64,000 nucleotides of DNA from Amphiscolops sp. MND2022 (lineage: Eukaryota), in assembly GCA_964187785.1 (NCBI GenBank), contig OZ076415.1, positions 65,348,001 to 65,412,000 on the forward strand, given 5' to 3'. A model generated the notes under the pieces. That model was not told where the DNA came from. It saw only the letters and a program-made list of their open reading frames with translations, and did no database searches. This document shows, piece after piece, positions 6,998 to 49,693 of the stretch (position 1 is the first letter of the stretch; every line of letters begins with the position of its first letter). Position numbers and translations under genes: made by a program.

Positions 6998-7356
6998 ATT
7001 TCGAAATTCACACTCTATTGCTACAGCCAATCCTTTAAATGACAATGGTGAATAAAGCGAAAGATGCCCATTTTGTGATTCTGAAACGAAGGTTTTTGTT
7101 AAAACCACGTAGTATCTTTAGAACTTAGTGTAGAATATAATGACAAATTAGCTTTGACTTTTCAGTCTAAATATCGATTTATATATTGCTTGAAACAAAT
7201 GATCATGAATTAAGATTTTCCATTGCATAGGATGTTTATACTCCATAATTTGAAAGTGCACCTTGCACCATGAGAAGGAAAAATGAATAAGTTGGGCATC
7301 TTTCGTAATTATCAGATTCTGTCACTGCATTACCAAGTGCACCCGTTGATCGCTGC

Positions 7357-7628
7357 ATGGATTCCGATGATGCCTCCGAAGGAGAAAGTTCAGAAGCAGG
7401 TTTAGATGTCAAGAGCCGCAATCGTTCACGTCGTGAGGACTTGGAACAATGCATTTTGTGTTTCCAAACTGTTGCGAAAATGCGAGACCACATCACAAAC
7501 AAGCACAAGCTGAATGATCGTCCGATACTCAAGAAATTTTTGTCTTATTTTTCTACACTTTCAACAAAGAAGTGTTTCCAATGTATCCAATGCAAAAAAG
7601 AATGGGTTTTCGATACGGGCACCCTGAG
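7357..7628 (+). CDS. C2H2 zinc-finger exon, probable 5' part of the recombinase gene interrupted by the LTR element
   Basis: CILCFQTVAKMRDHITNKH (C-x2-C-x9-H-x4-H); ends at a GAG|GTATTG donor-like site at 7628/7629. Confidence 0.5.
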
Positions 7629-7642
7629 GTATTGCTGACCAT

Positions 7643-9222
7643 TGTCGCACGCATGGGTAAAATTTGTTTATTAGTTTTAATCTGTCAAGTCCTTGTTTGC
7701 ATTTTACAAGGTACTATCTCGCGACGGTTCTGTTATTGATTTAACAAGTATAAGTCCCAACAAATAAATTTGCAACTTACTAATAAAGGGGGTGCCTTGC
7801 GCTTACGTGCGGACAAAAGAAATTGCGTGAGTCGTGCAAGGCAGTGGTTGTAAATGAGCTTCCTGTTTACTGAAAATGTATGGTGAATAAATATGTTTAA
7901 TTACGAATGAGTTGAGAATATTGAAAGTGGACAATTTCTGGACATAGCCATATCTCTTGCAATTGTTACAAATCTCAGATTAATAAAGATTACAACTTCA
8001 TTTTACAAGAAGAAGTAATATAACTTTTACAATTTATCATTTAAGAAAATGAAACTATTTACAAATAATGAGAATTTCCCTTTTTCTTCGGAAATCTTTT
8101 TCTCAAACAAAATTTACAAATCCGTACTATTTTAAACGGAAGAGTTTTGATTTAGATGTCTCTATTCAGTAGAAAGTTGAATAGCATTAAGACTTTTTCA
8201 TAATATAGCACTTTAAAATTTCAATCATCCCTTTTCTTATGTGAGTTTAAGTAACGTCAACCTTATAGAACTATTTAGTTCTAGTGAAAATAATCAAAGT
8301 TAAAGTTTTGTCAACCGCAGAATTGAAATCAGCGGAAAATAGCTAAATTTGAAGTTTTGTCAACCGCAGAATTGATATCGGCGGAAAATAGTTAAAGTCA
8401 AAGTTTTGTCAACCGCAGAATTGAAATCAGCGGAAAATAGCTAAAGTTGAAGTTTCAGAGAGAGTGAAATCTCTACTGAAAGGTCTAAATAGTCAGACTC
8501 ACCAAACCGGAGACGAAATTGAAGAGAAATTTCTAAGTTAGAAATTTCTTGTAAGGGAAGATTGGTTCTGGAAGTTGAAGTTAAATCAAGGATGAGTGGA
8601 GAAATTTTCTAAGATGCAAGGGTAGGATTAAAAGAGAATCATTGGATCTGAGTTATAAAGCAAGAAGTTTTGTTGAGTTAAATAGGAATCTGAATTGAAA
8701 TGTGAAGGCGAGAAATAGACTTTCTAAGTCTGAAGGGGAAGATAATAGTAAAGGGAGAGGAAAGGGGGTAAAGTAAGAAAGAAGTGCAGGGGTGAGGGGA
8801 GAGAAGTGGAAGAGAAGTGAAGAGAAACGAGAGCTTTTAAGTTTAAGCTCTGTCCGTTTCAATAAGTGTATGAATCTCCTCGCCTGCGTTGGCCGTATAT
8901 ATACAGCCAAGCATTTCTTATCGTGCGCTGCGTAGCAGGCATGGCTTATCTTTCACCAATCATAGTTGGTTTCATATTTCAAATATACGCGGTATAATAT
9001 AGAATTCTTCACTTGTGCAATTCCTTTCTCGTCACAGTACTTCATCATCATTATTACCATCGTTATGGCCGCCGCCTTATGGCCGCCATCTTCATCTACA
9101 ACTTTCTCCCCCATAAACAAACGTTAGTTCTAGTTCATGTTTGTTTCTTTATTTGTTAATTAAATATAAACTGCACTTTAGCACCTAATTATGTTTGTTA
9201 AAGCGTTAGTCATAACGCGACA
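7643..9222 (-). repeat. 3' LTR (1580 bp)
   Basis: Direct repeat of 23951-25530 with three substitutions spotted by eye; TG...CA termini. Confidence 0.97.
8303..8449. repeat. Three tandem 49-bp repeats inside the LTR (also 24611-24757)
   Basis: AAGTTTTGTCAACCGCAGAATTGA... starts at 8303, 8352 and 8401; each unit has a CCGC...GCGG inverted pair. Confidence 0.9.
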
Positions 9223-9234
9223 GCTCACCCCCCC
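9223..9234 (-). promoter_or_regulatory. Polypurine tract
   Basis: Minus strand GGGGGGGTGAGC immediately precedes the 3' LTR. Confidence 0.75.
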
Positions 9235-9259
9235 GGCAGGATGAAAGAAAATAAATGAG

Positions 9260-10197
9260 TTATGGGTCAGACTGAAAGAAGGGGGAGTTATGTAGCGCGA
9301 GTGACTGAGGGGAAGGTTCCTTAAATTTGATTCTAAATATTATAGAGTCATTGTTTAGGAATGCTTCTCTGAAGTTGCAAGTAACTTCGTATGAGGGATG
9401 AAGTCTTCTTTGAGGAGGTTCGGGTGCGTGTAGAGATTGTGAAGGGTATCTTCGTGGTTGTGGGGGTTGATTGGGAAAAGTGTGGACCACTTGTTGCCTT
9501 CGTCCTTCTGATCAAGTATTTCGACTTCTACTGTTTTATCAAAGGGCCATGTTTGTGGGTGAGTGAAGTCGCTATAATGAAGTTCACAGCTAATAGAAGA
9601 GTGGGTCCCACGGAAGATGTTTATCCCGTAAGGGAATATTCTGAAGGAAATTTTGCAGCCTGATAGGTATGTTGGGTAAATAGGGCTCGCGAAGCTGTTT
9701 TTGATGTTGTGAAAGGGATCGTCTGGAGAGGTCCTTGCTTTTCGGTAAAGTGTGGAGAAGGCGGAAACTTGCCAAGTGATAAAATCTTTACCGTTCGCTT
9801 CAATCTGGCTCGCTCTGCTAAGGAGGGAGCTTTGGTGTTTGATTGTCGCTCGCAAATCGAAGATAGTGACTTCCAATTGTTGACGTTTATCTCGTGCCTC
9901 TTCGATTGAGGTACATAGCAGTTTGATTCGGTTTTCTAACTTCTTTTGGGGTTGATTAATGTCCGTTAAAGGGAAGGACTTTCGAAGCGGTGTGCTTTTT
10001 GTTCCCTGGTTATAGGTACTAGTTGATTTCTCCCATTCACTAATCCACATATTTAGTCTTTCCACTCCTTCGAGGTTTGCATGTTCTTCTTGATCGTTTT
10101 CTTCAGGCATAGGTGGCCAGTCGGGGTTAGGGATCGGTAGGTAGGGTTTGTGTTTTGGGATGAAGGGGGTGGCATTTGGGTTTAATTTTTGGCTCAT
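9260..10197 (-). CDS. Accessory protein: PAM2 motif + coiled coil + TRAF-C/MATH domain (one frameshift near 9370-9390)
   Basis: N-terminus QKLNPNATPFIP. TRAF motifs ITWQVSAF, FASPIYPT, IFPYG and TWPF lie in ORF 9355-10197. The last TRAF strand FLNNDSIIFRIKF lies in the overlapping frame 9260-9490. Confidence 0.8.
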
Positions 10198-10775
10198 TGT
10201 GCAGATATGGATCTTAAGGGAACTGTCAGCCGCTGTCCCTTCAGTGCAGGGTTCTCAATAGTGTATTCTTGTCTTTTGTTGTCCCAAAAGACGATTTTCC
10301 AGGTTGAAAACTGTGGGAGTAGAGAATACTTTAGGTTTGCGTTAAACCTAGGTTTTTTAACGTATCTGGCTTTTCTAGTGAAGTATTCCCTTTTATGTTG
10401 CTTATGTAAGGGTGCTTCATCGGCTATCTCGTTGTTCCATTCATGATAGTGTTTTTGTGGTGTGGTTCTTCTGATGTCCTTTCCACCAAATCTAGGAGGA
10501 TGTTGTGTTGACGGGATTGGTGGTATGTCTCCTGTGAATGACAAAGGAAAGGGGAGTTGGTCGGATGGCGTTGGTGTGAAGGTTGGAGTTGGAGATTTTG
10601 AGGGTGATGATGGGACCGTTGAGTCAGGGGGGTCGGGAAGGAAGGTAATTGTTGTAGACGAGTCTGGTGTCAAAAAGTCTGAAGGAGATAGGGGTTCGAT
10701 TTCTAGGTCACTTTCTGGGATAGGATCCAGGGTATCGTCGTCCAGGCTTGGTAGGTCGAATAGTGGTTCTAGATT
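10194..10775 (-). CDS. Accessory protein exon (acidic/Pro-rich N-terminus, basic C-terminus), probably spliced
   Basis: The frame is open from 10775, directly after a TTAGTTTACTTTTAG acceptor-like site, with no ATG. The stop overlaps the next ATG (ATGA at 10197-10194). Confidence 0.6.
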   Translation of the reverse strand, partial: NLEPLFDLPSLDDDTLDPIPESDLEIEPLSPSDFLTPDSSTTITFLPDPPDSTVPSSPSKSPTPTFTPTPSDQLPFPLSFTGDIPPIPSTQHPPRFGGKDIRRTTPQKHYHEWNNEIADEAPLHKQHKREYFTRKARYVKKPRFNANLKYSLLPQFSTWKIVFWDNKRQEYTIENPALKGQRLTVPLRSISAQ

Positions 10776-10821
10776 CTAAAAGTAAACTAATGAATGAATG
10801 AACTTGAAAATGTTTTTGGCT

Positions 10822-12969
10822 TTATATTGGAGCTACGAAGCTCTGTACTGAGGGATAAAGTGATTCTTCCTTATTCTTCAGTGCTTGGAGTTCTACTTCT
10901 TTTCCATTATCTTCAGTTTTCGCGTTTTTATCTTCAACGCTATCCTCGTAAGGGGCCCGCGGGGTGAATACAGAAGTTAAAACTGAAGTAAAGAAAAGAT
11001 TGTACGAAGCACTGAGCAATGTTTTAGTGAAGCTCAGTGTATTACCTGTGAGGTGACGAAGTTCAAAGTATCGGAAGACGAGTACCGTGATATCTATTAC
11101 GAACTTAATGAAAAGAAAGGCGCCAAAATACGCGCCGCAGAGTTCTAGTACGTAAGATATACTTCCAAATGTTTCAAGGAACTGATTTTTGAAGTAATCG
11201 GGTGAGATCATGCCGTCAACATAAAAATCTGTACGGGGTGCATAATACGCGAAAGATTCAGGTCCACTATGGGCCATTGAGGGTGTGATGAGCTCTCGTG
11301 AGAACTTCTGGAGGGCGTTGCGAGACGCTGCGCTGATGAGGATGTTGTCCCAAAATTCTGAGAGTTGTTTAGGCGTATACATTCCCGCGTCTTGTGAACC
11401 AGGGAAGGATCTAGTAATCATTGGTTGTATGTCTTTGGGTCCGAAGATAGCAGGTCGGTCGCGATGTTCGGGTGAAGGAGTGAGGGTAAACCAGGAGTCT
11501 TTGTCTTCCATATCCAATTGAAAGAGGTTCTTAATGCGATCGCTGCAATTTTGGGCGTTCGCGTTAGGATAGGTCTGTCGGGTGATTGGGTCCACGAAGG
11601 CAACCACTCCTTTGTAGAAGATGGGTATGCGGTCGTAGCATCGGTTCATCGTGTGAAGAGGTGAGTGGGATTCCGGACAGTGGTAGAGCCAAGCGAGGCT
11701 GCCATCTGTGTTCAGGAACATTGAGCGATTTCCCGTGAGCATGTATCCGGCGAGGCGAGGATTTTCCATTGATAGCATCAAAATAGTAAGGATTTGAGTT
11801 CTTTCTTGTTCGCATTGTGCTTTGAGGAGCTGGATTTCTGAAGCTTCGAGGAGACGAGTGCTCTCAAAGAAGAGATAATCAAGCTTTGTCCCTTGGTGTA
11901 ACTCGTAATCCATGTTGAGGTAATGAGGTGTATTAGGGTTGGGGTCGCTCGGGCCTCGAAAGAGGTGGAGTCGGCCATTACCAGAACCATCTTCGGGTGA
12001 ATAATATTGTAGTTTAGATGTCTCTCCCATGGAGATGCCGAGTCGTCTGCCGGACGTCATGTCGAAGCCACCAAGTTGGATTGAAACGTACAGGGATTCG
12101 TAGTTGGTCGGGTATACATCGTCTGGTTTGTTGCAATACTTTTGTGGTCTGTTGTAGACTTCGAATAAAAATTTGGTAGTGGAGTCGTTGCCGCTTACAA
12201 TATAGTAGTTAGATCCGTGTTTGATCATGTTCACGATTTCTTTCCTATGTACTGCAAGCACGCAATTATCGGGCTCCGCCCATGTGTAGGCGTATGGGTC
12301 CAGTGACGTCGTTTCGCAACCTAGTTGTTCTAAGGGGCAGGGAAGGACCATCTGAAACGGAGTCAGGACTTTTCCATCTCGAGTTTTTACTGATAATTCA
12401 GCATCTTGGATGTGAGATTCGAATGTTTCTCTTTTGATCCAGCCACCTGTCTTGCATTCATTTCGGGTATCTGGGTCGCGTACACCGTCCCAACTCTTTC
12501 CGTATTTGGCGTTTCTCGTCTGTACTTGTTTCACTCCTTTCTTAAATTTGAGGGGTTGTCCATGGATTATGACTTCTTTGCCTTCACCCATTGCCTTGCA
12601 GGTTTCGGGTGACAGGGAAAGATCGCTGGTGATTCCGTCGTGTAGGATTGACATACTGGAGTGGTCGTGATAACCACAATGCCATTCTTCACTCTGATGT
12701 TTCACACGGCACATAGTGGCGTTGATAGTGCGGCGGAAATGTTTAGTGTATAACGTTACGCTCGCACGACTTACCTCTAAGTTTTCAGGTGCCACATTGC
12801 ATTGTTCAACTTGATTCAATGCGTAGAGTTTATTTTGGGTCATTTCGCCGCAGTCGAAATGAGTTACTCGCAGTTTTTTAGCAACGCTAGCGAGGTTTGG
12901 CGTTGGACGTTGTAATATCACAACGGGCGCGTAATGGGCGCATAAAAAGAGTAAGTAAAATAATTTCAT
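10822..12969 (-). CDS. env: Envelope glycoprotein, chuvirus-G-like (class III fusogen-like)
   Basis: N-terminal signal peptide; Cys pattern HFDCG...C...MCRV......HCGYHDHS; N-glycosylation sequons; C-terminal hydrophobic TM segment; TTTCAG acceptor-like site 2 nt before the ATG. Confidence 0.8.
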   Translation of the reverse strand: MKLFYLLFLCAHYAPVVILQRPTPNLASVAKKLRVTHFDCGEMTQNKLYALNQVEQCNVAPENLEVSRASVTLYTKHFRRTINATMCRVKHQSEEWHCGYHDHSSMSILHDGITSDLSLSPETCKAMGEGKEVIIHGQPLKFKKGVKQVQTRNAKYGKSWDGVRDPDTRNECKTGGWIKRETFESHIQDAELSVKTRDGKVLTPFQMVLPCPLEQLGCETTSLDPYAYTWAEPDNCVLAVHRKEIVNMIKHGSNYYIVSGNDSTTKFLFEVYNRPQKYCNKPDDVYPTNYESLYVSIQLGGFDMTSGRRLGISMGETSKLQYYSPEDGSGNGRLHLFRGPSDPNPNTPHYLNMDYELHQGTKLDYLFFESTRLLEASEIQLLKAQCEQERTQILTILMLSMENPRLAGYMLTGNRSMFLNTDGSLAWLYHCPESHSPLHTMNRCYDRIPIFYKGVVAFVDPITRQTYPNANAQNCSDRIKNLFQLDMEDKDSWFTLTPSPEHRDRPAIFGPKDIQPMITRSFPGSQDAGMYTPKQLSEFWDNILISAASRNALQKFSRELITPSMAHSGPESFAYYAPRTDFYVDGMISPDYFKNQFLETFGSISYVLELCGAYFGAFLFIKFVIDITVLVFRYFELRHLTGNTLSFTKTLLSASYNLFFTSVLTSVFTPRAPYEDSVEDKNAKTEDNGKEVELQALKNKEESLYPSVQSFVAPI

Positions 12970-13037
12970 TTCTGAAATTCTTCAGTCTTTGACAATCAAT
13001 CAGGAAAAATGTTTTTTATAGATATGTGGATCCACGG

Positions 13038-13457
13038 TAAGGCCGTAAAAAGGCAAGCCGTAATATCAAACCGGCAGCTTAGCTGGCACGACACTAAGCG
13101 GAGGTTAAAATTTTATAGTAGTAACCTCACTACTATTGGAAAGTGCCTTATAGAAAGATTGTTTTTTTTTGTTTAAAGTATAGGTTTCGGAGTAAGGCCG
13201 TAAAAAGGCAAGCCGTAATATCAAACCGGCAGCTTAGCTGGTACAACACTAAGCGGAGGTTAAAATTTTATAGTAGTAACCTCACTACTGTTCACACGTA
13301 CCTAAGAGAAGGAGTAGTTTATTTGTCTTTTAGTTTAGTTTAATGTTATGGATCCTGAAATAAGGCCGTAAAAAGGCAAGCCGTAATATCAAACCGGCAG
13401 CTTAGCTGGCACGACACTAAGCGGAGGTTAAAATTTTATAGTAGTAACCTCACTACT
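13038..13457 (-). repeat. Three 97-bp structured direct repeats separated by 58- and 71-nt unique spacers
   Basis: Copies at 13038-13134, 13193-13289 and 13361-13457. They differ only at two positions in copy 2, both in a predicted loop. Confidence 0.95.
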
Positions 13458-13517
13458 ATTCAAAGAGTGCCCGAAGAAAAATAGTAAAAGAAACTAACTT
13501 CAACCATCTGTGAAGGT

Positions 13518-13862
13518 TCAGCTGTAGTTATCACTGATTGATTTTAGACTGGGAGAGTGTTTGTTACGTCTCTGAGCGTCGAGGAAATCGATTAACTTGC
13601 TGAGGAGATGAAGGGTCAGAGGGTGAACGTGATCTAAGTAAGCGATCTCCCTGTAGTCGGTTAGCGCCTTCGCAAGATCTGCTGCTTCTGTCGAGTCTGT
13701 GGCGACAGGGATGAGCCAATGTCCCGTTTGATGTGGTCGGAGGCTGTGGAGTTCAATCTGAAGTGCGGGGGCGCTCTCTTTCCAGGCTATAGAGAGGATC
13801 TCAAGAAGTGTGTTTGTTTCCGGGTGACGCCAGAGGAATTTGAGTTGTATTTTAAACATCAT
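13518..13862 (-). CDS. Small accessory ORF (paralog family), likely ATG at 13862
   Basis: Overlaps the stop of the upstream ORF by 11 nt; shares an S-x-x-x-A-x-L-x3-L-x2-Y pattern with its neighbours. Confidence 0.6.
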   Translation of the reverse strand: MMFKIQLKFLWRHPETNTLLEILSIAWKESAPALQIELHSLRPHQTGHWLIPVATDSTEAADLAKALTDYREIAYLDHVHPLTLHLLSKLIDFLDAQRRNKHSPSLKSISDNYS

Positions 13863-14247
13863 AGGTCTCAACTAGGGTGTGAAGATATTTGATTCTAACC
13901 TCTTCTTCAAAGGGGTTAGTTACTAGGGTGATATCCATAAAATAAACCAAGTCGTCGAAAGCCTTGTCTTTAAGGACGGCGGGGTGTTGGAGTATGTATT
14001 GTTGGAACGATAGGAATAGGTAGGCGTATTCCTTGGACCCGAAGTGAATAGGGAAGAGGACTAGTGCTTCTTTGTCTTCTGGTGTGAGTATACGGACTTG
14101 TATCGCCGAGGTAGTGATCTCGTAAAAGATTGACTGTATTTCGTATTCACCCGTGAGTTGTATGGGTTTCCAAGGAACCGGAGGTTGAAATTGAGTGTGG
14201 AAGTAGTACTTATTTCCTCGAAATACGGCAACTGCGGGAGAGGACAT
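13852..14247 (-). CDS. Small accessory ORF, 131 aa (paralog family)
   Basis: Its ATG overlaps the upstream TAA (TAATG at 14249-14245). Confidence 0.65.
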   Translation of the reverse strand: MSSPAVAVFRGNKYYFHTQFQPPVPWKPIQLTGEYEIQSIFYEITTSAIQVRILTPEDKEALVLFPIHFGSKEYAYLFLSFQQYILQHPAVLKDKAFDDLVYFMDITLVTNPFEEEVRIKYLHTLVETYDV

Positions 14248-14468
14248 TAAAGGACTGACTTGGCTCTTGTGAAGACTTCGGTAGGTGTGTTATTATATAG
14301 TAGACTCTCCAGTAGTGGGTAGATAGGTGATGCTGGCACACACGTGTAGGTTTCACTCTCTTCTTCTGCGATTGCGTAGGCTTGTATGATTATGTTCTGT
14401 GTTGAGGGTTCCTTCTGAATATCAGTTATCTGGGAAAGTCGGTTGTCAATTTTGAATATTATGATCAT
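14247..14468 (-). CDS. Small accessory ORF, 73 aa
   Basis: TGATG overlap at its start and TAATG overlap at its end. Confidence 0.55.
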   Translation of the reverse strand: MIIIFKIDNRLSQITDIQKEPSTQNIIIQAYAIAEEESETYTCVPASPIYPLLESLLYNNTPTEVFTRAKSVL

Positions 14469-14635
14469 CAGTGAGCTGTTATGCCTTGTGGCGTGTGTGC
14501 ATCAAACATAGCAAATCTGAGAATGGAATCATCAGTTATTTCATTGCGTTTTTGGGGGTATTTGTAGAGGAGAGAGGATTACGACTTCATGAGTCGTCGT
14601 AGTAAACTAGACAAATGTCCGGGTAGGATATTATA

Positions 14636-14727
14636 TTTTATATCTGATGACTAAGTTGAATAGTGATACATATATGGTTGACTTCAATCAATAATTATAA
14701 ACACTTTGCATGACTTTAAATAAATCA
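14636..14727. promoter_or_regulatory. Candidate internal bidirectional promoter
   Basis: TATAAAA on minus at 14642-14636, TATAAA on plus at 14696-14701 and Inr-like TCA at 14725-14727; divergent ORFs on both sides. Confidence 0.35.
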
Positions 14728-14742
14728 AATTTGTATTTAGGG

Positions 14743-15405
14743 ATGAGCAACAACAACAACAACAACTATAGCGACTATTACGAAGAATCCTCGACCGATG
14801 AGGAGACTACTGCTCCAGGGTCTGTGTCGGGCACTGCCGCTACCTCTTTGCCGCCACAATCGTCGTCGTCAGCTGGGCCGTCCTCGTCGAGCGGAGCGCG
14901 CACCAGTTCTTCTGCTCCCGCGTCATCAGGTTCTCAGGCAGGGACCTCTGGGGGTGGGTCTTTTGTGGCGTTTGTGGCCCCGAGGACTAGTGGCCCTTTT
15001 CCGCAAGCTCCCTCTACCATCTCGCAGGGTGTTTTGGAGAGCCCGGGGGATCAAAGTTTTATGGGTTTATTTACCCATAGGGATATCGACCGCCTAGAAA
15101 ACTGGGCTTCATTAACTAGTTCCCTTCAGGGTACCCCCGGGTTTTCTGTTTCTGGGCCTCCCGGTCCAAATGCTCTAACTAGTTTCTTGCGGGCTAACTG
15201 GGGGGCCCGTTGGGAGCAGACTCTCCTGTCCTCTCTCGGCGAAATAGTCGTCTTCCAGCTGCGAGCCTACATAAGTGGCTACTCGCAGCTGACTAGTTTT
15301 GAGAGGGGTCAGTGGACCCGCCTCTATTCATTGTGGACAATGGGGGAGCGGGCGGCTCAGCTGCGGCGACTTGCAGAGAAGGGAGGTTTCCTGGAGATTG
15401 AGTAG
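14743..15405 (+). CDS. Antisense accessory gene (Ser/Gly-rich N-terminus, helical C-terminus)
   Basis: Long ORF opposite the element strand in a region with no minus-strand ORF; TATA upstream and AATAAA at 15532-15537. An alternative ATG is at 14710. Confidence 0.65.
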   Translation: MSNNNNNNYSDYYEESSTDEETTAPGSVSGTAATSLPPQSSSSAGPSSSSGARTSSSAPASSGSQAGTSGGGSFVAFVAPRTSGPFPQAPSTISQGVLESPGDQSFMGLFTHRDIDRLENWASLTSSLQGTPGFSVSGPPGPNALTSFLRANWGARWEQTLLSSLGEIVVFQLRAYISGYSQLTSFERGQWTRLYSLWTMGERAAQLRRLAEKGGFLEIE

Positions 15406-15572
15406 GCATTATTGCCTCTCATCTCCAGGAAATACTTTATTTTTCTACGCTTTTGTGTTTGCTGCTTTTCGTAAGTTCCTTCTCGGGGTTGCACAAATTG
15501 TATAGATAAAAAGTCTAATAATAATAATAATAATAAAGATAATATTTTTTTCGAATAAGCGGTAATATCCGG

Positions 15573-15998
15573 CTAGGAGCTAGGCGAGGAGATAGTAGAA
15601 CAGCAGAATAAGTCTTTTTGTGTGTTAGGTAATGAAGGTTGTAGGTCAGGTATCAGGGTAGGCATGTAGGATAGTAGTTCCTCTAGGATAGGGTCATGGT
15701 GGGTGACGGCATAATAGGCTAAGTGTTGATATAAGCGGGCGAAAGTAGGTGATTCTGGGTGTATATGAAGGTTAGATTTTCTAGGCGTAGGTTGTTTATG
15801 TGGGCTAGGATCTGGGTCGTTGGAGTAGAAACAAATTCTAACTATTTTGTTTTTGTAGGTCCAGTAGATTTTAGTAATCGTAACCTGCAGAATTCCTAAG
15901 GACTGGAGTTCTCGCGGGACTTGCCAAGGCAAGTTTAGATAGACTTTATGGCACGGCATAGTAAGGTTATTCTTTGTAACCAATTCTAGTCCTTTCAC
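15573..15998 (-). CDS. Small accessory ORF after pol, 141 aa (paralog family)
   Basis: Overlaps the pol stop by 32 nt; LHIHPESPTFARLYQHLAYY resembles FPIHFGSKEYAYLFLSFQQY of ORF 13852-14247. Confidence 0.6.
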   Translation of the reverse strand: MKGLELVTKNNLTMPCHKVYLNLPWQVPRELQSLGILQVTITKIYWTYKNKIVRICFYSNDPDPSPHKQPTPRKSNLHIHPESPTFARLYQHLAYYAVTHHDPILEELLSYMPTLIPDLQPSLPNTQKDLFCCSTISSPSS

Positions 15999-18900
15999 GA
16001 AGTATGGACTGTCGTGCTGGTTGATTGGGTTGTGCTCGCTGATAACGTGGATTTCTCTCTATTTGGCGGGCAACAGCCTTTCGTAACTCTTGCAAGGGAG
16101 TCGTTGACTTGGTAGACGATGCCGGGGTGTTAGTTGGGGGTGCTGGAGTTGGTTGACGTTGAGTTAACGTCAGGATAGGGGTTGCTGCGTTTTGAGGATG
16201 TGATGTCGAAGGCTGATCGGGAGTCTTGGGAGTTGACAACAACTGATTTTCTGGAGAGATGATACCAGAGTCTGTGCTCTGGGGGGTTTGCGTTCTTTTG
16301 CGGGCAAGTATTTGGTTTTGTTGATTCCGTACTGGCAATATGGAGAGGTCTCCGAGTTTTTGTGGTTCTGAAACATTAAGTTGTTCAATTCTTCCTTTGA
16401 CAAGATTGTTATAAAAATCCGTGTCTCCACGGTGGGGAGTAGTGTATTCTTCGATAAGAGGGGGGAGTGTTTCTTCTTTAGGAAAGTATTCTATTAGATG
16501 GTTCCTATGTACAGTTCGGAGATTCTCGGGGTTTTGATCTTCCATTATTTGGTAAGTTGTATTTGTAATTCGTTTGGTAACCGTAAAGGGTCCTAGTCGC
16601 AGTTGTTGGAGTTTTTGGCTTTTGGAGAGGTCTTTTCGATGGTTCTCTAGCAGAACCTTTTGTCCAATGTTGAGGTGGTTCCCAAGTTTAAATCTGTTCC
16701 TGTAGGCGTGTGATTGAGCTGTTTGTTTTCTGCACTTTTCATATGTGGATGAGTAGACCTTTTTGAAGGCTGTTTCTCGTTCCAATAAGCTTTGTGATAG
16801 TTGTGGTCGTAATAGTCCATTTAGTAGTTCGTTTTTGACTTGGTTTTCGCTATGGCAATGAGGAGGTAATCCTTGACAGAATTGTGATTTGCAGTTCTTG
16901 TTTTTGTTCCTGTAGAGTCCCAGCTTCAGACTCATAGGTATCTGTGGTTTATTGCAAAACACTATCTCGTAGGGGGTCTTTCCAGTCGTGTAGTTGACGC
17001 TTGTGTTGTGGGCGAATGCAAATTTGGCAGCTAGTTGGGCCCAGTTGTTTCCTGATTCGTTTAGGAAGTTTCTCCAGTATCTTGCAATGTGTTGATTTTG
17101 AGTTTCTACTTTGCCATTTGTCCAGGGTGAGTGTGCGGTTCTTGGTCGAAGTGTAATGCCAAACTCTTTAGTCCAATTGACGAATTCAGTGTTCACGAAA
17201 GCTGTTCCTCTATCATGTACGATAGATTGAGGGATGCCATAGTGCATAATCCATTTTTCCATCGCATTGATTGTAGATTGTGCTCCTGTGTCTCTGACTG
17301 GGTATGCCATCAGGTAACGTGAGAAGGCGTCGATGATCAGAAGGCAATGTGAATTTCCACGACTGGGAGGATTGAGTGGTCCTTTGTGATCAATGTGGAT
17401 GGTTCTGAATACTTGAGTTTCGGTTTCGCAGTCTTCCAGTGGGACTTCGTTGTTTCTCCGTTGTTTGGATTTGTTAGATTGGCAGCTAACACAATCTTGT
17501 GTGAGGGCACAGATCCAGTTGTGCATCCCTGGCCAGTAGTAAAATCTCTTAGCATTGAGGAAGGTCTTTTCTGCTCCCATGTGGCCGCCGAGGTCGTTGT
17601 AATGTCCCATACGAAAGCAAGCTAAAAATAGAGAGAGAGGTAGACAGATTCTCAGATTCTCGTCTGTTGGGTCATCAGTTGGCTCGTTATAACAAAGGAG
17701 GTTTCCTTGGCCTTCTATAGATAATCTGTCGAATTCCTGAAAGTAACGCATGAGGCCTTTTGAGTGTTGTAACTCTGGTGATTTTGGTTCGGGTTTGTTT
17801 CCTGTTCTTACCCATTGTCGGACCACGCTGAGTACCGGGTCATTTATTTGTTCTTGTAAGATCGTTGTAACGTTTAGTTCTACTTCTTTGGATAGTTTAT
17901 CAAGTTGTCTGACAAGTTCCTGTGTTGGTGTCTTTTGTTTTTCAGTTGAATTTGTAGGTAGATCGAGGTGTTCTATTGCCTTCGCGTTTTTGGGAAGACT
18001 TGGGTTACGTGCGATGGGATCTTCTGTGTTGAGCTCGTAGTTGGTCTCGTTTATTTCTTGACTCTGATTGTCTGTGAGGGCTTCGTCATCCGTATCACTG
18101 TTGATGGAGCTGTAAGTGTTTTGTGATAAATCCGAAGTGCTATCCCGTGTTCCTGACCTGATTCTTAGTTCTTCGAATTTTCCAAGTTCTCTTCCAGCGT
18201 CGAGGCAACTCTGTGCTGACTCTACTTTCGGCAGGTTAGGTTCTTCGTAGATAGAGTTAACTGTGAAGTTATTCCCATCATTTTGGAGATGAAGTACTTT
18301 CCGTTCTTTTCCCTTCTCGTACAAGATGGGGTAAAAGTCGTTCTTGGATGTCTCTTCATTTTCTTCGTGTTTGATTTTGTAGTGTACTTGGGTTCCATGT
18401 TCGTCGAAAAAGTGTATGTCAGTTGGGATGACTTTGTGACTGAGTTGATGTTTCTTGTGTTCCTCGATGGAGACGTTTCGACTGAGTATGTCAGGGAAGG
18501 CTAGGTTGCTTCCTGGAGTCCAAATTATCTTGAGATTCGGGAATTTAGATATAATTACTTGGTACCTGAAAAAACGGGGTGAAATTTGTCCCTTTCTTCC
18601 CCAGAGATAAAGAATCGGCTTGTGATCGCAGTATAGGTAGATGGGGAAGGGAGATCCGATGATGTAGTGTTCATACGTCTGAAGAGCTGAGACTATGCCA
18701 CATAATTCTCTGTGTAGTGTGGACATCTTTTGTTCTTCCTTTGCGAAAACTCTTGAGTTGAAGGAAATGATCCGTTTCCCTTCTGGGAATTGTTGGATGA
18801 GGATACATCCTGTCCCAACGTTTGACGAGTCGACGTGTATGTGAAAGGGGTATTTTGTCGAGGGTATTGCGAGCACTGTGTCTTCGGTAATTCTTTTCTT

Positions 18901-21477
18901 TATTTCCTGGAAAAGGTCTTCGTGTTCTTGGTTCCAGCAAAAATTTGTATCTTTCTTGGTGAGTTCGTAAAAAGGTCGACTATCGACATGAAGATTCTTG
19001 ATGTAGCAGCTATAGAAGCCCAAAGCTCCTAAGAAGCTTTTCACTTCGGTTTTGGTCTTTGGTGATTTGAGATTGTGTAGGTCTTTTACTCGTTTTGCGA
19101 CAGGTTGTATTCCTTCGGCTGCTATCACGTGTCCCAAAAACTTGACTTTCCTTAAGAAGAAGAGTGTCTTATCTGGTGCTGCCTTGAGTCCGGCTTTCCG
19201 CAGTAAGTTATGGTATTCTTGAATTACCGTGAACATTTCTTGTTTGTTTTTGGCTTGCATCAACGTGTCGTCGATGTATGTAATTGCCTGTTTCCTTTTG
19301 ATGAGGGGTTCGAAGTGGATAGTCATCATTCTGCTAAAGAAGCTTGGTAATCCCTTGAGTCCATAGAATCCCCTGGTGAAGGTGTATTGTTTTCCGCCAA
19401 TGATGAAGCTGGTGAGTTTTTGCGTGGGCTCGTCTAATGGGACTTGGTGAAATGCACAGGAGAGATCACTTACTGAGAAGATGTTTCCATTTATTAGTGT
19501 CATTATGGTTTGGATCGGTTCTAAGGGCCAGGAATAATTTGTTAGATCTGTCACCGAGTTTAGATATCTCGCATCTATGATCAGCTTGACATAGTCATGT
19601 TTTGGTTGTAGTATAATAGGATTCACAAATAAGGATCCCATTTCTTCATCGTCGCCCATTTCTCTGATGATATCAGCGTCTTTGAGTTGTGTGAGTAGCT
19701 TCTCTAGCTTTTCTCGTAGGTGAAGTGGTACTTTGCTGGGTCTCTGTCTCTTTAGAATTGCTCCAGGTTCTAGTTTAATGTTAAATTTTTGTCTGGTTTT
19801 CCCTACGTCAAATTTGTGTTGGGAGTATACATCTCTTGCGTCCATTAGTAAGTCTATTAGGAGAACCAGTTCTTCGTCTGTGAGGTCTGAGTAGCGAAAG
19901 TCGAATTCTTTAATGTATCGCACTGCTTCCTTATTTTGATACTGAAGGTAGTACTCGATCAGTCGTTCGTTGTCTTCTTTTGGCCTGAAGATTTTAAATT
20001 GCTCATCGCAGGGTGGTTGACAGGACTTTGCGTCGCTTGTGAAGTCTGTCTCCAGCTCTCTATGTTTGAGATGAAATTGCTCGGAAAATTGTTGTATCTC
20101 ATCTTCTAGTACGTATTCGGGGTCTCCTCTTGTAGTCATGGCATAGACATCTAGTTCGTTTCTTGTATAAATTCGGAGTTGTATTTCTGAGTATGCAAAT
20201 ACGTCTTGAATGAGTTGAGTGACGTCTTGCCATTGGAAGTCTTCTAGCTCTGAGGCTTCCCGTAGCATGGATATAGTTTTGATGCCGCTCATTTTGGCGT
20301 GTGCTTTTAGAGTTTCGAGAGATTGAACTAGTAATTGTGGGTCAATCTTGTCTTTTGATTTTGCTTTCGTAATCAGAACATATATAAATCGTTTCAGAGT
20401 TTCGTCCCAGTAGGGTATGGTTTCTCCTTTCTGTGGTTTCTGTTTTGCGCATGTATCCTTAAGTGAAGGTATTTTCGTTAGGATTTCTTTTGAGAAGCCT
20501 TTGGCTGGCTTTAGGTCGGCCGGGACGAAGATGATGATAGGGTCTGGTCTGCTGAGTATTGTTTTCGAGTTTCCTCCTTCTATTCTGAGGCAATCGTTCA
20601 TATCTTGTGAAGGAATGGTAGAGTGTAATAGGAAACAGTCGTTGTATTCTTCGTTTTCGTTTAGGATAGCATATGCGAGTTCTGTCGGGTTTCTAATTTG
20701 GTATTTCGGAATTTCTTGGTCTAATACGTCAAGCATTGAGTATCCGATAGTTCCTTTTACTAAGGTGATTGTATGGTTTTTGTTGTTTTCCATGACGATT
20801 GGTAAAGTCTTCTCAAATCGTGTGCAGAGGACATTTATGAAGTTAAGTCCAGTAGAAACTGCCTTCCTGTTCGGTAGGAACGTAGATCCAGGAGGAAATG
20901 AGTTATTAGTGTTTTCTGGTGCGAATTTGTAACATCTTGTCGTCTTTGGTTCGATATACATTGAGTGAGGAATTCTGACTGAGAGAATTTGTGATATATA
21001 GGGGTAACATTTGTTGAGTTGTAGGCTACCATAGCAGAAAGTATTTATAAGTCTTTTGAGTTCTATGCCAGGAAGATCAAAGTGTATTTTGTTAACTTGT
21101 TCTTGGCAGAAATTCATTCCAAGGAGGTTTTGGGTTTTCATCTCTGTTATCCAGACTGTTAATGGGAAGTTATGTTGTCCATCGGAATCGTAGTAGAGTT
21201 TGAGGGTGATGTATCCCATCATAGGGATGATCTGCCCAGAGTAGTTCCGTGTTGTGTTATTGCTTCTACTAAGTTCTAGGTCTTGTTGAAACTGGCAAAG
21301 TTCTCTAAAGGTCCTGTAGTTGATGATTGAAGATGTTGCCCCAGTGTCTAGTAGAAATTCGATTTCTAAGCCACTATCTTTTTGTGAGTCTCCGGCAGCA
21401 AAATAATAAAGATTAAGACTAAATTTTAGAGGGGCACTGCTGCTATTTCTATTTTTCGGAGACCTTAGTAGTTTAAA
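15967..21477 (-). CDS. pol: Pol polyprotein: protease, macrodomain, reverse transcriptase, RNase H, integrase
   Basis: The frame is open upstream of the track ATG (21222) and includes LLDTGA at 21348-21337. It has RT YIDD, RNase H VDSS/DHKP, integrase HHCC (H.....GH...CVSC), the D,D(35)E-type core IHID/HDRG/KVETQN and a GPF motif. Confidence 0.97.
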   Translation of the reverse strand, partial: FKLLRSPKNRNSSSAPLKFSLNLYYFAAGDSQKDSGLEIEFLLDTGATSSIINYRTFRELCQFQQDLELSRSNNTTRNYSGQIIPMMGYITLKLYYDSDGQHNFPLTVWITEMKTQNLLGMNFCQEQVNKIHFDLPGIELKRLINTFCYGSLQLNKCYPYISQILSVRIPHSMYIEPKTTRCYKFAPENTNNSFPPGSTFLPNRKAVSTGLNFINVLCTRFEKTLPIVMENNKNHTITLVKGTIGYSMLDVLDQEIPKYQIRNPTELAYAILNENEEYNDCFLLHSTIPSQDMNDCLRIEGGNSKTILSRPDPIIIFVPADLKPAKGFSKEILTKIPSLKDTCAKQKPQKGETIPYWDETLKRFIYVLITKAKSKDKIDPQLLVQSLETLKAHAKMSGIKTISMLREASELEDFQWQDVTQLIQDVFAYSEIQLRIYTRNELDVYAMTTRGDPEYVLEDEIQQFSEQFHLKHRELETDFTSDAKSCQPPCDEQFKIFRPKEDNERLIEYYLQYQNKEAVRYIKEFDFRYSDLTDEELVLLIDLLMDARDVYSQHKFDVGKTRQKFNIKLEPGAILKRQRPSKVPLHLREKLEKLLTQLKDADIIREMGDDEEMGSLFVNPIILQPKHDYVKLIIDARYLNSVTDLTNYSWPLEPIQTIMTLINGNIFSVSDLSCAFHQVPLDEPTQKLTSFIIGGKQYTFTRGFYGLKGLPSFFSRMMTIHFEPLIKRKQAITYIDDTLMQAKNKQEMFTVIQEYHNLLRKAGLKAAPDKTLFFLRKVKFLGHVIAAEGIQPVAKRVKDLHNLKSPKTKTEVKSFLGALGFYSCYIKNLHVDSRPFYELTKKDTNFCWNQEHEDLFQEIKKRITEDTVLAIPSTKYPFHIHVDSSNVGTGCILIQQFPEGKRIISFNSRVFAKEEQKMSTLHRELCGIVSALQTYEHYIIGSPFPIYLYCDHKPILYLWGRKGQISPRFFRYQVIISKFPNLKIIWTPGSNLAFPDILSRNVSIEEHKKHQLSHKVIPTDIHFFDEHGTQVHYKIKHEENEETSKNDFYPILYEKGKERKVLHLQNDGNNFTVNSIYEEPNLPKVESAQSCLDAGRELGKFEELRIRSGTRDSTSDLSQNTYSSINSDTDDEALTDNQSQEINETNYELNTEDPIARNPSLPKNAKAIEHLDLPTNSTEKQKTPTQELVRQLDKLSKEVELNVTTILQEQINDPVLSVVRQWVRTGNKPEPKSPELQHSKGLMRYFQEFDRLSIEGQGNLLCYNEPTDDPTDENLRICLPLSLFLACFRMGHYNDLGGHMGAEKTFLNAKRFYYWPGMHNWICALTQDCVSCQSNKSKQRRNNEVPLEDCETETQVFRTIHIDHKGPLNPPSRGNSHCLLIIDAFSRYLMAYPVRDTGAQSTINAMEKWIMHYGIPQSIVHDRGTAFVNTEFVNWTKEFGITLRPRTAHSPWTNGKVETQNQHIARYWRNFLNESGNNWAQLAAKFAFAHNTSVNYTTGKTPYEIVFCNKPQIPMSLKLGLYRNKNKNCKSQFCQGLPPHCHSENQVKNELLNGLLRPQLSQSLLERETAFKKVYSSTYEKCRKQTAQSHAYRNRFKLGNHLNIGQKVLLENHRKDLSKSQKLQQLRLGPFTVTKRITNTTYQIMEDQNPENLRTVHRNHLIEYFPKEETLPPLIEEYTTPHRGDTDFYNNLVKGRIEQLNVSEPQKLGDLSILPVRNQQNQILARKRTQTPQSTDSGIISPENQLLSTPKTPDQPSTSHPQNAATPILTLTQRQPTPAPPTNTPASSTKSTTPLQELRKAVARQIERNPRYQRAQPNQPARQSILRERTRIGYKE
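21387..21477 (-). promoter_or_regulatory. -1 ribosomal frameshift signal (UUUAAAC + downstream stem)
   Basis: The slippery heptamer T TTA AAC lies in the gag frame at 21477-21471 and pol is in the -1 frame. A 6-nt spacer is followed by GGTCTCCG pairing with CGGAGACT and GCAGCA pairing with TGCTGC. Confidence 0.8.
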
Positions 21478-22919
21478 GGGCGGAAATCGGCAATAGAGTT
21501 CACCGAGTAGTCGGTTTCTAAGAACTGTACTGTGTTGGATCTTCCTATGTCATTAGTTTTTGGGAATCTTTGCTCGTAAGATTGAGTTGGAGTGTTGGGT
21601 CTTTCGTTTCTGTCTAGTGGTCTTTGAAAAACTGAGTTATTTCTTGGTGGAAGAAGTTGTATGTTGCGATTAAAGGAGCTAGACTGGTCTCTGTTGAAGT
21701 TGAACGGAGATCTTGCTCTTTGGGGTCCGGGGGAAACACTTCTGGAGTTGTTAGAATTGTTTAGGAAGGGTTTTCTCCCTTCTTGTGAAAATCTTTGGTT
21801 ACCAGGATTGACTCTTGTATTCGTAGGTCGGCGTTCTGGGTTGAAATTTTTTCTTTGTGGTCTATCGTATTGATTCCAGGCAGGGTTTGACTGCATAGCT
21901 CCAGCCAGTGCTAGTTGATGTGCCACAGCCATATGTTTTCTGATTTCTGAATCTGGTAATCTTGGTTGAAATCTAGAGCCATGTTCAGGTCCAGTTCTTT
22001 TGTTGTAGTCGTTGGTGAATGTTATTCTTCTTTCTGGGTTAGCTTCGTTTTGAACCTTCTTCACTTCTTCATCTCTCATCTTCTTTCTGCACCAGTTAGG
22101 TGTGTGCCCATTTGTTCGGCAGTAGCCACAGAATCGTGTGGCCATTCTTCGACCTGTAGCATTAGGGTCTACAGTTTTCTCTACTGCGTTGATTGTGTTA
22201 TTCATCTGTTCTTTGATTTGTAGTTTGATTCCCTTCAAGTCGTCTCGCATTTCTTGTATGAGTGGGTCTGAATGTGATTCTCCGCCAGTTAGGGCGGTAG
22301 TTACCGTGTAGGAGAGGTCTTTGTTTATTACAGCTTGGGAGAATTGTTCCCAGGTTGCATTCGGGTGATCCATTAAATATTCGTGTGCCTTTTCTCTTAG
22401 TTTTGGAGGTCTTAGGCCTCTCAGTGAGTAGTCGATGCACCTTTGTCTTCTTTGTCGGTCTTGTGCTGCTCTTTCTGCGTTTCTGTCGTTTTGTGCGACG
22501 CCGGCAAGATCATCTGGCCAGCCTTTCCCCACAACAATTTTGATTCTGTGTAGAAAATTCTTTATCTCTTCTCCATCTCTTCTGGTGACATGTTCTGCTT
22601 CCATTCTGTGTCTGAATTTATTTCGGCCATCTGCGAATCTTGTGATGAACCTTTCTCTGATTTCTTGCCAGGTGTTAGCGTCTGTGATACTTGTCTCGAA
22701 CCACTCCGCTGCTGGTCCTCTTAGTAGTGTAGCAAAGTAGGATTTTCTCCTGAAGTTGTAGTCGTCAAGTGCTGCTCCGTTTGCTGGGGTATCACCATGA
22801 GAGAAACGGAACTTCTTTTCAATTAGCTGTATAAATTGTTCAGGATCTTGATCTGGGTCTGTTCCCGTGAATTGGTCTCTGCCGAGGTCTGGATAAGCCA
22901 AGTAATTTTGCGCAGCCAT
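21465..22919 (-). CDS. gag: Gag (capsid + CCHC zinc knuckle)
   Basis: Ty3-like LRGPAAEWF capsid motif; CGYCRTNGHTPNWC = CX2CX4HX4C. Confidence 0.95.
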   Translation of the reverse strand: MAAQNYLAYPDLGRDQFTGTDPDQDPEQFIQLIEKKFRFSHGDTPANGAALDDYNFRRKSYFATLLRGPAAEWFETSITDANTWQEIRERFITRFADGRNKFRHRMEAEHVTRRDGEEIKNFLHRIKIVVGKGWPDDLAGVAQNDRNAERAAQDRQRRQRCIDYSLRGLRPPKLREKAHEYLMDHPNATWEQFSQAVINKDLSYTVTTALTGGESHSDPLIQEMRDDLKGIKLQIKEQMNNTINAVEKTVDPNATGRRMATRFCGYCRTNGHTPNWCRKKMRDEEVKKVQNEANPERRITFTNDYNKRTGPEHGSRFQPRLPDSEIRKHMAVAHQLALAGAMQSNPAWNQYDRPQRKNFNPERRPTNTRVNPGNQRFSQEGRKPFLNNSNNSRSVSPGPQRARSPFNFNRDQSSSFNRNIQLLPPRNNSVFQRPLDRNERPNTPTQSYEQRFPKTNDIGRSNTVQFLETDYSVNSIADFRPLNY

Positions 22920-23929
22920 TGTGAGCTATTGAGATTATAAAGGATAGAAGATGAAGCAAAGAACAATAAGCCAAAGACTCTATGAGGTATGATACTCTTG
23001 GCTTTTGAGAATAACAGCAAAGAGTTAAAGTAAAAATTGTTTGTACTATGATTCTAATAGTGATAATTATTAGACAGGTCTGACAAATCATAAAATCCTT
23101 AATACGCTGCTAGCAAAAATGAAAATAACACTTCTCGGTCGAAGTTAGGCTCATTTCCTATATTTCGTACTCTGATTCCACAGTTTAGGGGATACTTACA
23201 AATCCCAGTAGTGTTGAGATTATCGTAAAAAGGGTAGTTCGGGGTATACCAATCCTCCGAGTTAACCCAAAGAAAACCTATGAAGAGTACAGTCAGTCCA
23301 CTAGGTCTTTCATCCGCTCGTTGAACCTTTCTTTAACTTTAGGAAAATAACTAGTTCACAGAGGGAGTTACTCTCGTCTTTAGGATTAAGTGCGTGGGGC
23401 CCAGATCACTATCATGCAATCACTTGGGTACTATCACTAGGATACTAGGTTTCCCACTCGGAATGCTACATAGGTTCCAAGATACCCACTGGGCTCACGG
23501 CCTTCAAACAGCCTCCGAGGAGACCTAGGCGGGCTTTTACTTAATTTGTGTCCGTCCGGACTAGAGTGAATTTCCCAACTGTGCCTTTAAATAAAGCGTA
23601 TAGAGTCAGTTTCATTCTTGTTTAGGACTGATGGTAATCTCATAGTATTTTCGTAAAGGTAAATCATTTCTAACAAATGGTTTTGGGGATTGAAAGAAAG
23701 AGAGTAGTGCATAAACTCTTCCCAAAGCTGTTAGGCTGGAGAGATTCTGTTAGAGTATTTACTAGCAGTTTTACGATTTATATAGATTAGAGAAGCCACA
23801 TATTGAGGCAGTAGGAGAAAGAAGAAAATTAGAAGTAATGTTAAGAGAAATAAGTAAGTAACCCTTACTTCTGAGAGTAGGGATTCTAACAGATAGCTCA
23901 TTTACTTCTCTATTACAAGAGAAAAAGTA

Positions 23930-23947
23930 GCCTCACTGGTCGCACCA
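23930..23947 (-). promoter_or_regulatory. Primer-binding site (18 nt)
   Basis: TGGTGCGACCAGTGAGGC begins after a 3-nt spacer following the 5' LTR; its complement ends in CCA like a tRNA 3' end. Confidence 0.85.
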
Positions 23948-23950
23948 GTT

Positions 23951-25530
23951 TGTCGCACGCATGGGTAAAATTTGTTTATTAGTTTTAATCTGTCAAGTCC
24001 TTGTTTGCATTTTACAAGGTACTATCTCGCGACGGTTCTGTTATTGATTTAACAAGTATAAGTCCCAACAAATAAATTTGCAACTTACTGATAAAGGGGG
24101 TGCCTTGCGCTTACGTGCGGACAAAAGAAATTGCGTGAGTCGTGCAAGGCAGTGGTTGTAAATGAGCTTCCTGTTTACTGAAAATGTATGGTGAATAAAT
24201 ATGTTTAATTACGAATGAGTTGAGAATATTGAAAGTGGACAATTTCTGGACATAGCCATATCTCTTGCAATTGTTACAAATCTCAGATTAATAAATATTA
24301 CAACTTCATTTTACAAGAAGAAGTAATATAACTTTTACAATTTATCATTTAAGAAAATGAAACTATTTACAAATAATGAGAATTTCCCTTTTTCTTCGGA
24401 AATCTTTTTCTCAAACAAAATTTACAAATCCGTACTATTTTAAACGGAAGAGTTTTGATTTAGATGTCTCTATTCAGTAGAAAGTTGAATAGCATTAAGA
24501 CTTTTTCATAATATAGCACTTTAAAATTTCAATCATCCCTTTTCTTATGTGAGTTTAAGTAACGTCAACCTTATAGAACTATTTAGTTCTAGTGAAAATA
24601 ATCAAAGTTAAAGTTTTGTCAACCGCAGAATTGAAATCAGCGGAAAATAGCTAAATTTGAAGTTTTGTCAACCGCAGAATTGATATCGGCGGAAAATAGT
24701 TAAAGTCAAAGTTTTGTCAACCGCAGAATTGAAATCAGCGGAAAATAGCTAAAGTTGAAGTTTCAGAGAGAGTGAAATCTCTACTGAAAGGTCTAAATAG
24801 TCAGACTCACCAAACCGGAGACGAAATTGAAGAGAAATTTCTAAGTTAGAAATTTCTTGTAAGGGAAGATTGGTTCTGGAAGTTGAAGTTAAATCAAGGA
24901 TGAGTGGAGAAATTTTTTAAGATGCAAGGGTAGGATTAAAAGAGAATCATTGGATCTGAGTTATAAAGCAAGAAGTTTTGTTGAGTTAAATAGGAATCTG
25001 AATTGAAATGTGAAGGCGAGAAATAGACTTTCTAAGTCTGAAGGGGAAGATAATAGTAAAGGGAGAGGAAAGGGGGTAAAGTAAGAAAGAAGTGCAGGGG
25101 TGAGGGGAGAGAAGTGGAAGAGAAGTGAAGAGAAACGAGAGCTTTTAAGTTTAAGCTCTGTCCGTTTCAATAAGTGTATGAATCTCCTCGCCTGCGTTGG
25201 CCGTATATATACAGCCAAGCATTTCTTATCGTGCGCTGCGTAGCAGGCATGGCTTATCTTTCACCAATCATAGTTGGTTTCATATTTCAAATATACGCGG
25301 TATAATATAGAATTCTTCACTTGTGCAATTCCTTTCTCGTCACAGTACTTCATCATCATTATTACCATCGTTATGGCCGCCGCCTTATGGCCGCCATCTT
25401 CATCTACAACTTTCTCCCCCATAAACAAACGTTAGTTCTAGTTCATGTTTGTTTCTTTATTTGTTAATTAAATATAAACTGCACTTTAGCACCTAATTAT
25501 GTTTGTTAAAGCGTTAGTCATAACGCGACA
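23951..25530 (-). repeat. 5' LTR (1580 bp)
   Basis: Copy of 7643-9222; candidate TATATATA at about 25205-25212. Confidence 0.97.
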
Positions 25531-25923
25531 CCATTTAATAATGTAACAAAAACTTCTCTTTGTTTAACCGTTAGACTATGACGTTATACATGGCGTTATT
25601 TTAAGTACGTAATTACAAATTATAACCATAAACAGTTATTATCCAGCTTGGACTTATATTTACCAGGTCACGACGTGCCCTGTGGAACCTGGGGGGTATA
25701 CACAATCATGCAATTTGTTCCAACACTACAGACATTTTCGAATAGGTTTTATAATGATCAGTAATCCTGATATGAAATTATTACAAAGTCAAAAGAACGA
25801 AAATGGTCAGCACTACATTTACAGTCACATGAGGTAGTGAAAATCACTGATCGAGAAAATATTGACCTATTTCCTGAAGAATTACGAGTTCAAATTCTGG
25901 TCTTTCGAGAGGCCTAGCAGCCG

Positions 25924-49540: not shown

Positions 49541-49693
49541 AAATATTAGAATACTATAGAATGATAACAGCGTAATAATAATATCTATAGTATTGTAGAG
49601 TATAGTAGTAGTTGCAAAGTATGGGTTGTAAGTAATTGCGTTAAGCAATGTATAGAATAACAGAGTATAGTTTAGTAGGTGTATTGTTTAGTA

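Follow-up and report, generated by a model that had tools for sequence, protein, structure and literature searches.

To elucidate whether three almost identical RNA modules located directly upstream of the env gene of an intact retrovirus-like element are a functional RNA, and which role such an RNA might play, a 64-kb stretch of DNA (64,000 nucleotides; referred to as the window) was analysed together with related elements. In the initial annotation, three spaced 97-nt modules had been described on the sense strand, which here is the minus strand. Each was said to comprise an H-type pseudoknot (AGTAGT pairing with ACTACT around a GAGGTT loop, which in turn pairs with AACCTC after an A/U-rich linker), followed by a GCTTAG/CTAAGC and a GCCG/CGGC hairpin. 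This observation was confirmed: all of these pairings are present at the positions given, with a linker of 10 nt. Copies 1 and 3 are identical, and copy 2 differs from them at two positions, both in the loop of the second hairpin. The last copy ends at 13038, 68 nt before the env ATG at 12969. The modules are 95–97/97 identical (98–100%), while the spacers of 71 and 58 nt are only 46–58% identical in global alignment. A tandem repeat search (TRF) returned a period of 155 with 2.6 copies, and two sub-patterns of 32–34 nt occurred only at these three places in the window, against 0 expected.

The modules belong to a full-length LTR retroelement of the Ty3/gypsy (Metaviridae) type, as judged by LTRs with TG..CA ends, a target duplication, gag, and a pol with the order RT, RNase H, integrase. 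Its gag, pol and env frames are all uninterrupted. The features of the element are as follows.

7643–25530, minus strand: full-length element of 17,888 bp; LTRs of 1580 bp, 99.8% identical, with TG..CA ends and a 4-bp target duplication CCAT.
23951–25530, minus strand: 5' LTR.
21465–22919, minus strand: gag (484 aa; Retrotrans_gag domain; one CCHC knuckle).
15967–21222, minus strand: pol (1751 aa; RT, RNase H and integrase).
13518–14247, minus strand: two small overlapping ORFs (131 and 117 aa), the second of which is conserved in relatives.
13493–13507, minus strand: conserved ATG plus two codons, followed by a 5' splice-site-like GTNAGN; predicted exon/intron border between 13499 and 13498.
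13361–13457, minus strand: module 1 (97 nt).
13193–13289, minus strand: module 2 (97 nt), with the two hairpin-2 loop substitutions.
13038–13134, minus strand: module 3 (97 nt); stem 1, 13129–13134 with 13117–13122; stem 2, 13123–13128 with 13101–13106; A/U linker, 13107–13116; hairpin 2, 13077–13099 (loop 13083–13093); hairpin 3, 13057–13075 (loop 13061–13071); tail, 13038–13056.
13143–13147, minus strand: flank pentamer GGCAC (also at 13467–13471; GGTAC at 13298–13302), complementary to the hairpin-2 loop of the module that follows; a tentative second long-range pairing.
10822–12969, minus strand: env (715 aa; Pfam Monjiviricetes_fusion, E 4.5e-33).
10194–10777, minus strand: 3' splice-site-like pyrimidine run plus TAG (AG at 10776–10777), followed by a methionine-less accessory ORF (193 codons from 10775, stop at 10194–10196).
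9355–10197, minus strand: MATH/TRAF-like ORF (280 aa), whose ATG overlaps the stop of the preceding ORF.
7643–9222, minus strand: 3' LTR, preceded by a G-rich purine tract.

Each LTR contains four tandem 49-nt repeats (8237–8504 and 24545–24812). The MATH/TRAF-like ORF (Pfam E about 1e-6) is shared by nearly all relatives retrieved and is probably a captured host-type domain. A 231-aa ORF (14710–15405, plus strand) lies antisense to the element between pol and the small ORFs, in a stretch without a sense ORF of 100 aa or more. It is 32–36% identical in three relatives (L004, L005 and L006, see below) and may be an antisense gene. Outside the element, the window contains a large satellite-like region (34300–49700) with units of about 1.6 kb and then about 420 nt (plus 507-nt variants) in more than 15 copies, and a run of 228 N (32067–32294; an assembly gap or masked stretch).

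Comparison with known RNA families, which had been proposed at the outset as a way of checking the modules, gave no match. Covariance models of Rfam were run at E≤1 on 14 kb and at E≤10 on the 571-nt stretch, and neither run returned an xrRNA, pistol or other ribozyme, IRES, RRE, export-element or other viral cis-element family; the only matches were noise (a baculovirus element at E=9 and a CRISPR repeat at E=6.7). ARAGORN detected no tRNA or tmRNA in 7000–26000, and a Pol III unit was discarded because the box-like strings lie in hairpin 2, whose sequence is not conserved. A stimulator of −1 frameshifting or readthrough was likewise rejected: no ORF runs through the modules, no conserved slippery heptamer was seen, and a stop lies 2 nt upstream only in the case of module 1 of the window. 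Folding energies of single sequences were unremarkable (z between −0.8 and −2.3, similar on both strands). What lifts the finding above chance is the comparative evidence, not thermodynamics.

To obtain this evidence, related elements were collected. The env protein has 280 homologues, all unnamed and all from assemblies. DNA around eleven of them was retrieved, and one further locus was found by a pattern scan of JGI metagenomes, whereas pattern scans of IMG/VR and of GTDB genomes gave nothing. A second copy of the element, 99.3% identical, is present in ENA assembly ERZ25074608 (locus L001). Locus L002 (env 75% identical) has three modules almost back to back, and loci L004 and L009 have one module each. 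L003, L005, L006 and L010 (env about 55% identical) carry one module of a second type (type B) with the same layout, one base fewer in the 3' strand of stem 1, and a different linker and hairpin-3 loop. L009 comes from a metagenome of the stony coral Cyphastrea (bioRxiv 10.1101/391565), which makes this a coral element family; the host of the window's element is probably a stony coral. L008 has only part of a module, and L013, a close relative, lacks the module because its sequence upstream of env is unrelated. A covariance model of the module found no further or more diverged copies in 185 kb of loci. L004 (contig ctg60967, 17,516 bp) was flagged circular by the assembler at about element length, which could be an assembly effect of the LTRs or an extrachromosomal circle. 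In L002 (2520–6080) gag is followed directly by a 385-aa ORF, the small ORF, three modules and env, with no pol in between; it looks like a pol-less derivative.

The absence of compensatory changes among homologues had been named in advance as an outcome that would speak against a functional RNA; the opposite was observed. Eleven distinct modules from eight loci were aligned with MAFFT without reference to structure. Stem 2, formed by the six bases enclosed by AGTAGT/ACTACT and six bases after the linker, is paired in 98.5% of cells, against 74.0 ± 3.8 in shuffled alignments; none of 500 shuffles reached the paired fraction or the covariation score. Five of its six pairs change on both sides, in 18 cells, while sliding the partner by 1–3 columns gave 26–53% pairing and 0–2 doubly changed cells. 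Six different stem-2 sequences were found, a small sample of about six independent helix variants from two ENA assemblies plus one metagenome contig, and in L002 each of the three adjacent modules carries its own matching pair. RNAalifold predicted the same helix independently. Hairpin 2 folds as a terminal hairpin in all 12 modules with at least six different stem sequences; its register shifts by one base in three modules, which lowers the column-wise count to 79%. Hairpin 3 shows one G-C to A-U exchange. The minimum-energy structure given by RNAfold for the window copies, which merges hairpins 2 and 3, is not shared by relatives. In stem 2, G·U pairs outnumber A·C by 6 cells to 1 (about 3 events to 1), which points to the sense strand.

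The H-type pseudoknot is thus only half supported. Loop-to-downstream pairing (stem 2) is borne out by covariation, but all six pairs of stem 1 are invariant, type-B modules lack one base of its 3' strand, and the RNAalifold consensus extends stem 2 by four nested pairs that would exclude stem 1, a nested alternative that is equally compatible with the data. With no bases between the two stems, the junction is also inferred to be sterically tight. These data speak neither for nor against the simultaneous formation of both stems, and the pseudoknot is plausible but not proven. A further contact is possible between the pentamer located 13–14 nt upstream of each window module and the hairpin-2 loop. 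It has the same position in all three copies, and the one loop change in copy 2 is matched by the complementary flank change. However, this is a single event, complementarity is not significant per sequence, and the contact is absent from two L002 modules.

These features bear on three alternative readings. In shape, the nearest known RNAs are loop-to-downstream pseudoknots such as xrRNAs or pistol. An exoribonuclease-resistant RNA (xrRNA), which would stall 5'-3' decay and leave an env-containing fragment, would agree with a compact fold in which a hairpin loop pairs with downstream sequence, with tandem duplication, and with the possible 5'-flank-to-loop contact. It is nevertheless very unlikely, given the missing Rfam match and the weak flank contact, and the decay product would be uncapped; exonuclease resistance was not assayed. 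The xrRNAs of flaviviruses and plant viruses are likewise compact folds with a loop-to-downstream pairing and are often duplicated in tandem, but in the modules no three-way junction is present, and the context is a retroelement intron rather than a 3' UTR. A new self-cleaving ribozyme, or an otherwise unrecognised catalytic or ligand-binding RNA, could explain fixed junction and loop bases between covarying helices with pseudoknot topology. This is highly improbable, as no ribozyme family matches, cleavage would cut the genomic RNA, and no conserved candidate cleavage site exists. The pistol ribozyme shares a hairpin whose loop pairs with a downstream strand, but its further helices are missing, as the initial annotation had already recognised. 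A DNA-level promoter or enhancer for env, with the A/T linker serving as a TATA box, was also considered. The linker reads as a TATA-like string, and a separate TATA-like run lies at 13012–13020, 51 nt before the env ATG. Relatives have a similar run plus an 8-bp palindrome about 26 nt upstream of their module, and this palindrome changes by two complementary bases between lineages. Oikopleura Tor elements have been described (PMC4402516); their env is reported to be transcribed from an internal promoter. However, selection keeps complementarity rather than sequence in two helices, with strand-specific G·U pairs, and the TATA-like string is altered in three of four type-B modules, so that this reading is very unlikely.

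A non-functional tandem duplication that is merely young or homogenised was examined next, decay of the repeats in other copies having been put forward beforehand as evidence against function. The window copies are nearly identical and could be recent. However, a neutral repeat should diverge uniformly, whereas the spacers of the same repeat units differ strongly, and the module is kept with compensatory changes in relatives whose env is only 55–75% identical. Between two genomic copies of the element there are 0 differences in 291 module bases and 8 in 260 neighbouring bases. Neutral duplication is therefore contradicted and was considered highly improbable. A 22-nt stretch within the first 60 nt of env (12912–12933, minus strand) resembles hairpin 3 (17/22 identical), can form its own 6-bp hairpin and lies one repeat period downstream of module 3; it may be a decayed fourth unit.

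Inspection of the flanking sequences revealed a context that had not been recognised in the initial annotation, namely that the modules lie inside a predicted intron which also holds env. Just after the stop of the upstream ORF, ATG plus six bases plus GTNAGN occurs exactly once within 900 nt upstream of env in all seven module-bearing lineages and in none of three module-less loci. In six lineages the ORF behind env contains no methionine and opens at the first base after a pyrimidine run ending in TAG. The encoded protein is conserved and has 341 unnamed homologues; of 120 of these, 106 have no internal Met. Seven listed database proteins begin with the two or three residues of the mini-exon fused to the first residue of that ORF. 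Six (P0124, P0253, P0254, P0154, P0162 and P0219) belong to the L004 lineage, P0124 aligning to the L004 ORF from residue 4 at 91% identity; the seventh, P0255, is 69% identical to the window's ORF. Gene calls in these assemblies are plain ORFs, and these proteins most likely come from env-less genomic copies that lack the interval from donor to acceptor, i.e., from reverse-transcribed spliced RNA, although this is inferred from the gene calls and the underlying DNA was not inspected. Hence, an intron of 2723 nt (13498 to 10776) holds the modules and env, and module 1 starts 40 nt inside it. The stop of the methionine-less ORF overlaps the ATG of the MATH/TRAF-like ORF by four bases (10194–10197), and an overlap of 1–4 bases is seen in L004, L005, L006 and L010, a layout that suggests coupled translation.

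In terms of position, three further readings compete. Translation control of env, by an IRES-like or a shunt/reinitiation platform on an RNA with an upstream AUG (that of the mini-exon) and long upstream ORFs, would fit the location of the modules directly upstream of the env AUG in every lineage. In the window the short ORF starting at the conserved ATG stops 2 nt before module 1, and structured leaders with short ORFs are the known shunt layout (PMC5902531). However, the distance from the last module to the AUG varies from 19 to about 115 nt, copy number varies from 1 to 3, the short-ORF stop is not at a fixed distance from structure in relatives, and no IRES family of Rfam matches; this reading is unlikely. 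Equally unlikely is splicing control, in which the modules would regulate the adjacent donor or be a cluster of structured alternative 3' splice sites for env mRNA. In its favour, every module is preceded by a pyrimidine-rich run ending in YAG, whose AG is the first two bases of stem 1, and in most relatives hairpin 3 is followed by another pyrimidine run plus YAG. On the other hand, the donor is not part of any conserved helix, the distance from donor to module varies from 33 to about 180 nt with other hairpins in between, and an elaborate fold with fixed loops is more than a splice site needs. The intervening hairpins are a second family of 1–4 repeated units (L004 4745–4775; L005 4693–4822; L006 4790–4850; L010 2729–2839), each with two 4-bp stems, a 2–3-nt bulge and a fixed 7-nt loop; the stems covary between lineages, and the window has no such hairpins. 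Finally, a packaging or dimerisation signal marking unspliced genomic RNA would agree with the intronic position, the repeated hairpins with fixed, U/G-rich loops and the CCHC knuckle of Gag. It is unlikely, because the junction-bearing proteins imply that module-less spliced RNA was reverse-transcribed and integrated several times, a 1-kb 5' leader is available for a conventional signal, and the loops are not palindromic. No complement of the fixed loops exists elsewhere in the element.

Taken together, the interpretation as a repeated functional RNA on the sense strand is supported and is held with high confidence, but none of the specific functions offered in the initial annotation could be confirmed, so that its interpretation is supported in part only. 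What the analysis demonstrates is the stem-2 helix, the two further hairpins, and the position within an intron that genomic RNA must retain; that stem 2 forms a pseudoknot with stem 1, that a protein is recruited, and that export is affected are inferences. Helix sequences drift and are compensated, while the linker, stem 1 and the hairpin-3 loop stay fixed, which is the pattern of a scaffold presenting fixed bases to a partner. The modules are therefore present on genomic RNA and probably on env mRNA, but are removed from the accessory mRNA. The env mRNA acceptor was not located, and if it lies downstream of the modules, env mRNA lacks them. In the preferred but tentative explanation, each module recruits a host export or stability factor or an element-encoded protein that lets intron-retaining RNAs escape nuclear retention or splicing and be expressed, and one to three copies would give graded avidity. 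The export role rests only on position and analogy, as no expression, binding or localisation data exist. Moreover, the sister lineages L007 (4735–4886), L011 (2396–2610) and L012 (2311–2669) lack the module and carry other repeated hairpin units before env, together with many pyrimidine-run-plus-CAG motifs. L011, for example, has five hairpins with one fixed 5-nt loop and two versions of covarying stems, which also gives some support to a packaging role. The function is thus either replaceable or lineage-specific.

A possible partner is the methionine-less post-env protein itself. Structure prediction, using the window's protein and database proteins, gave a disordered N-terminus, a basic helix and a small β-barrel with pLDDT above 90. 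Its only matches were SH3-like, KOW, Tudor and integrase C-terminal folds, all weak and not significant (E 0.1–0.5), and a PDB sequence search with the protein profile gave nothing meaningful. A more far-reaching possibility, considered unlikely, is a Rev/RRE-like circuit that evolved independently in a cnidarian Ty3/gypsy element. In this view the protein, made only from the spliced mRNA that borrows the ATG mini-exon, would bind the modules through its basic helix and β-barrel and thereby switch expression from spliced to intron-retaining (gag-pol and env) RNAs.

In function, the nearest systems are the Rev-responsive-type elements of complex retroviruses (RRE, RxRE, RcRE, RmRE), which are, like the modules, structured cis RNAs inside the env-containing intron; they are present on genomic and env RNAs and removed from the fully spliced accessory mRNA whose coding exons flank env. 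Here, 1–3 separate modules of 80–97 nt occupy the non-coding stretch before env instead of one large multi-stem structure inside env, there is no evidence of binding by the element's protein, and the host element is of the Ty3/gypsy type, probably of a cnidarian. Constitutive transport elements and the direct repeats flanking src in Rous sarcoma virus are also short structured RNAs occurring as repeated units, and in those host-factor-dependent systems the effect grows with copy number. They lie 3' of env near the LTR, are not pseudoknotted, and show no sequence or model match to the modules. The need for export of intron-containing genomic RNA is also documented for the LTR retrotransposon Cer1 (PMC10309623). 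The env-carrying Ty3/gypsy elements of metazoans ('errantiviruses', PMC13524379) share LTR-gag-pol-env organisation, multiple near-identical copies and a cnidarian host range. That survey describes F-type and gB-type env, and the terms 'splice', 'subgenomic' and 'MATH' do not occur in its text, whereas the present element has a Monjiviricetes-type fusion protein, at least four extra ORFs and an internal intron.

Cis-acting retroelement RNAs as such are known; the present one is new in sequence, fold and modular layout, and occurs in a new host group. As the module is short, repeated and naturally variable, it is a tractable object for RNA structure work and a marker for annotating this element family in coral genomes. 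Post-transcriptional control by dedicated structured RNAs inside the env intron is regarded as a hallmark of retroviruses. Finding a covariation-supported, modular RNA at the equivalent place in an invertebrate Ty3/gypsy element, together with an internal intron and accessory genes, would mean that such 'complex' regulation arose outside the Retroviridae.
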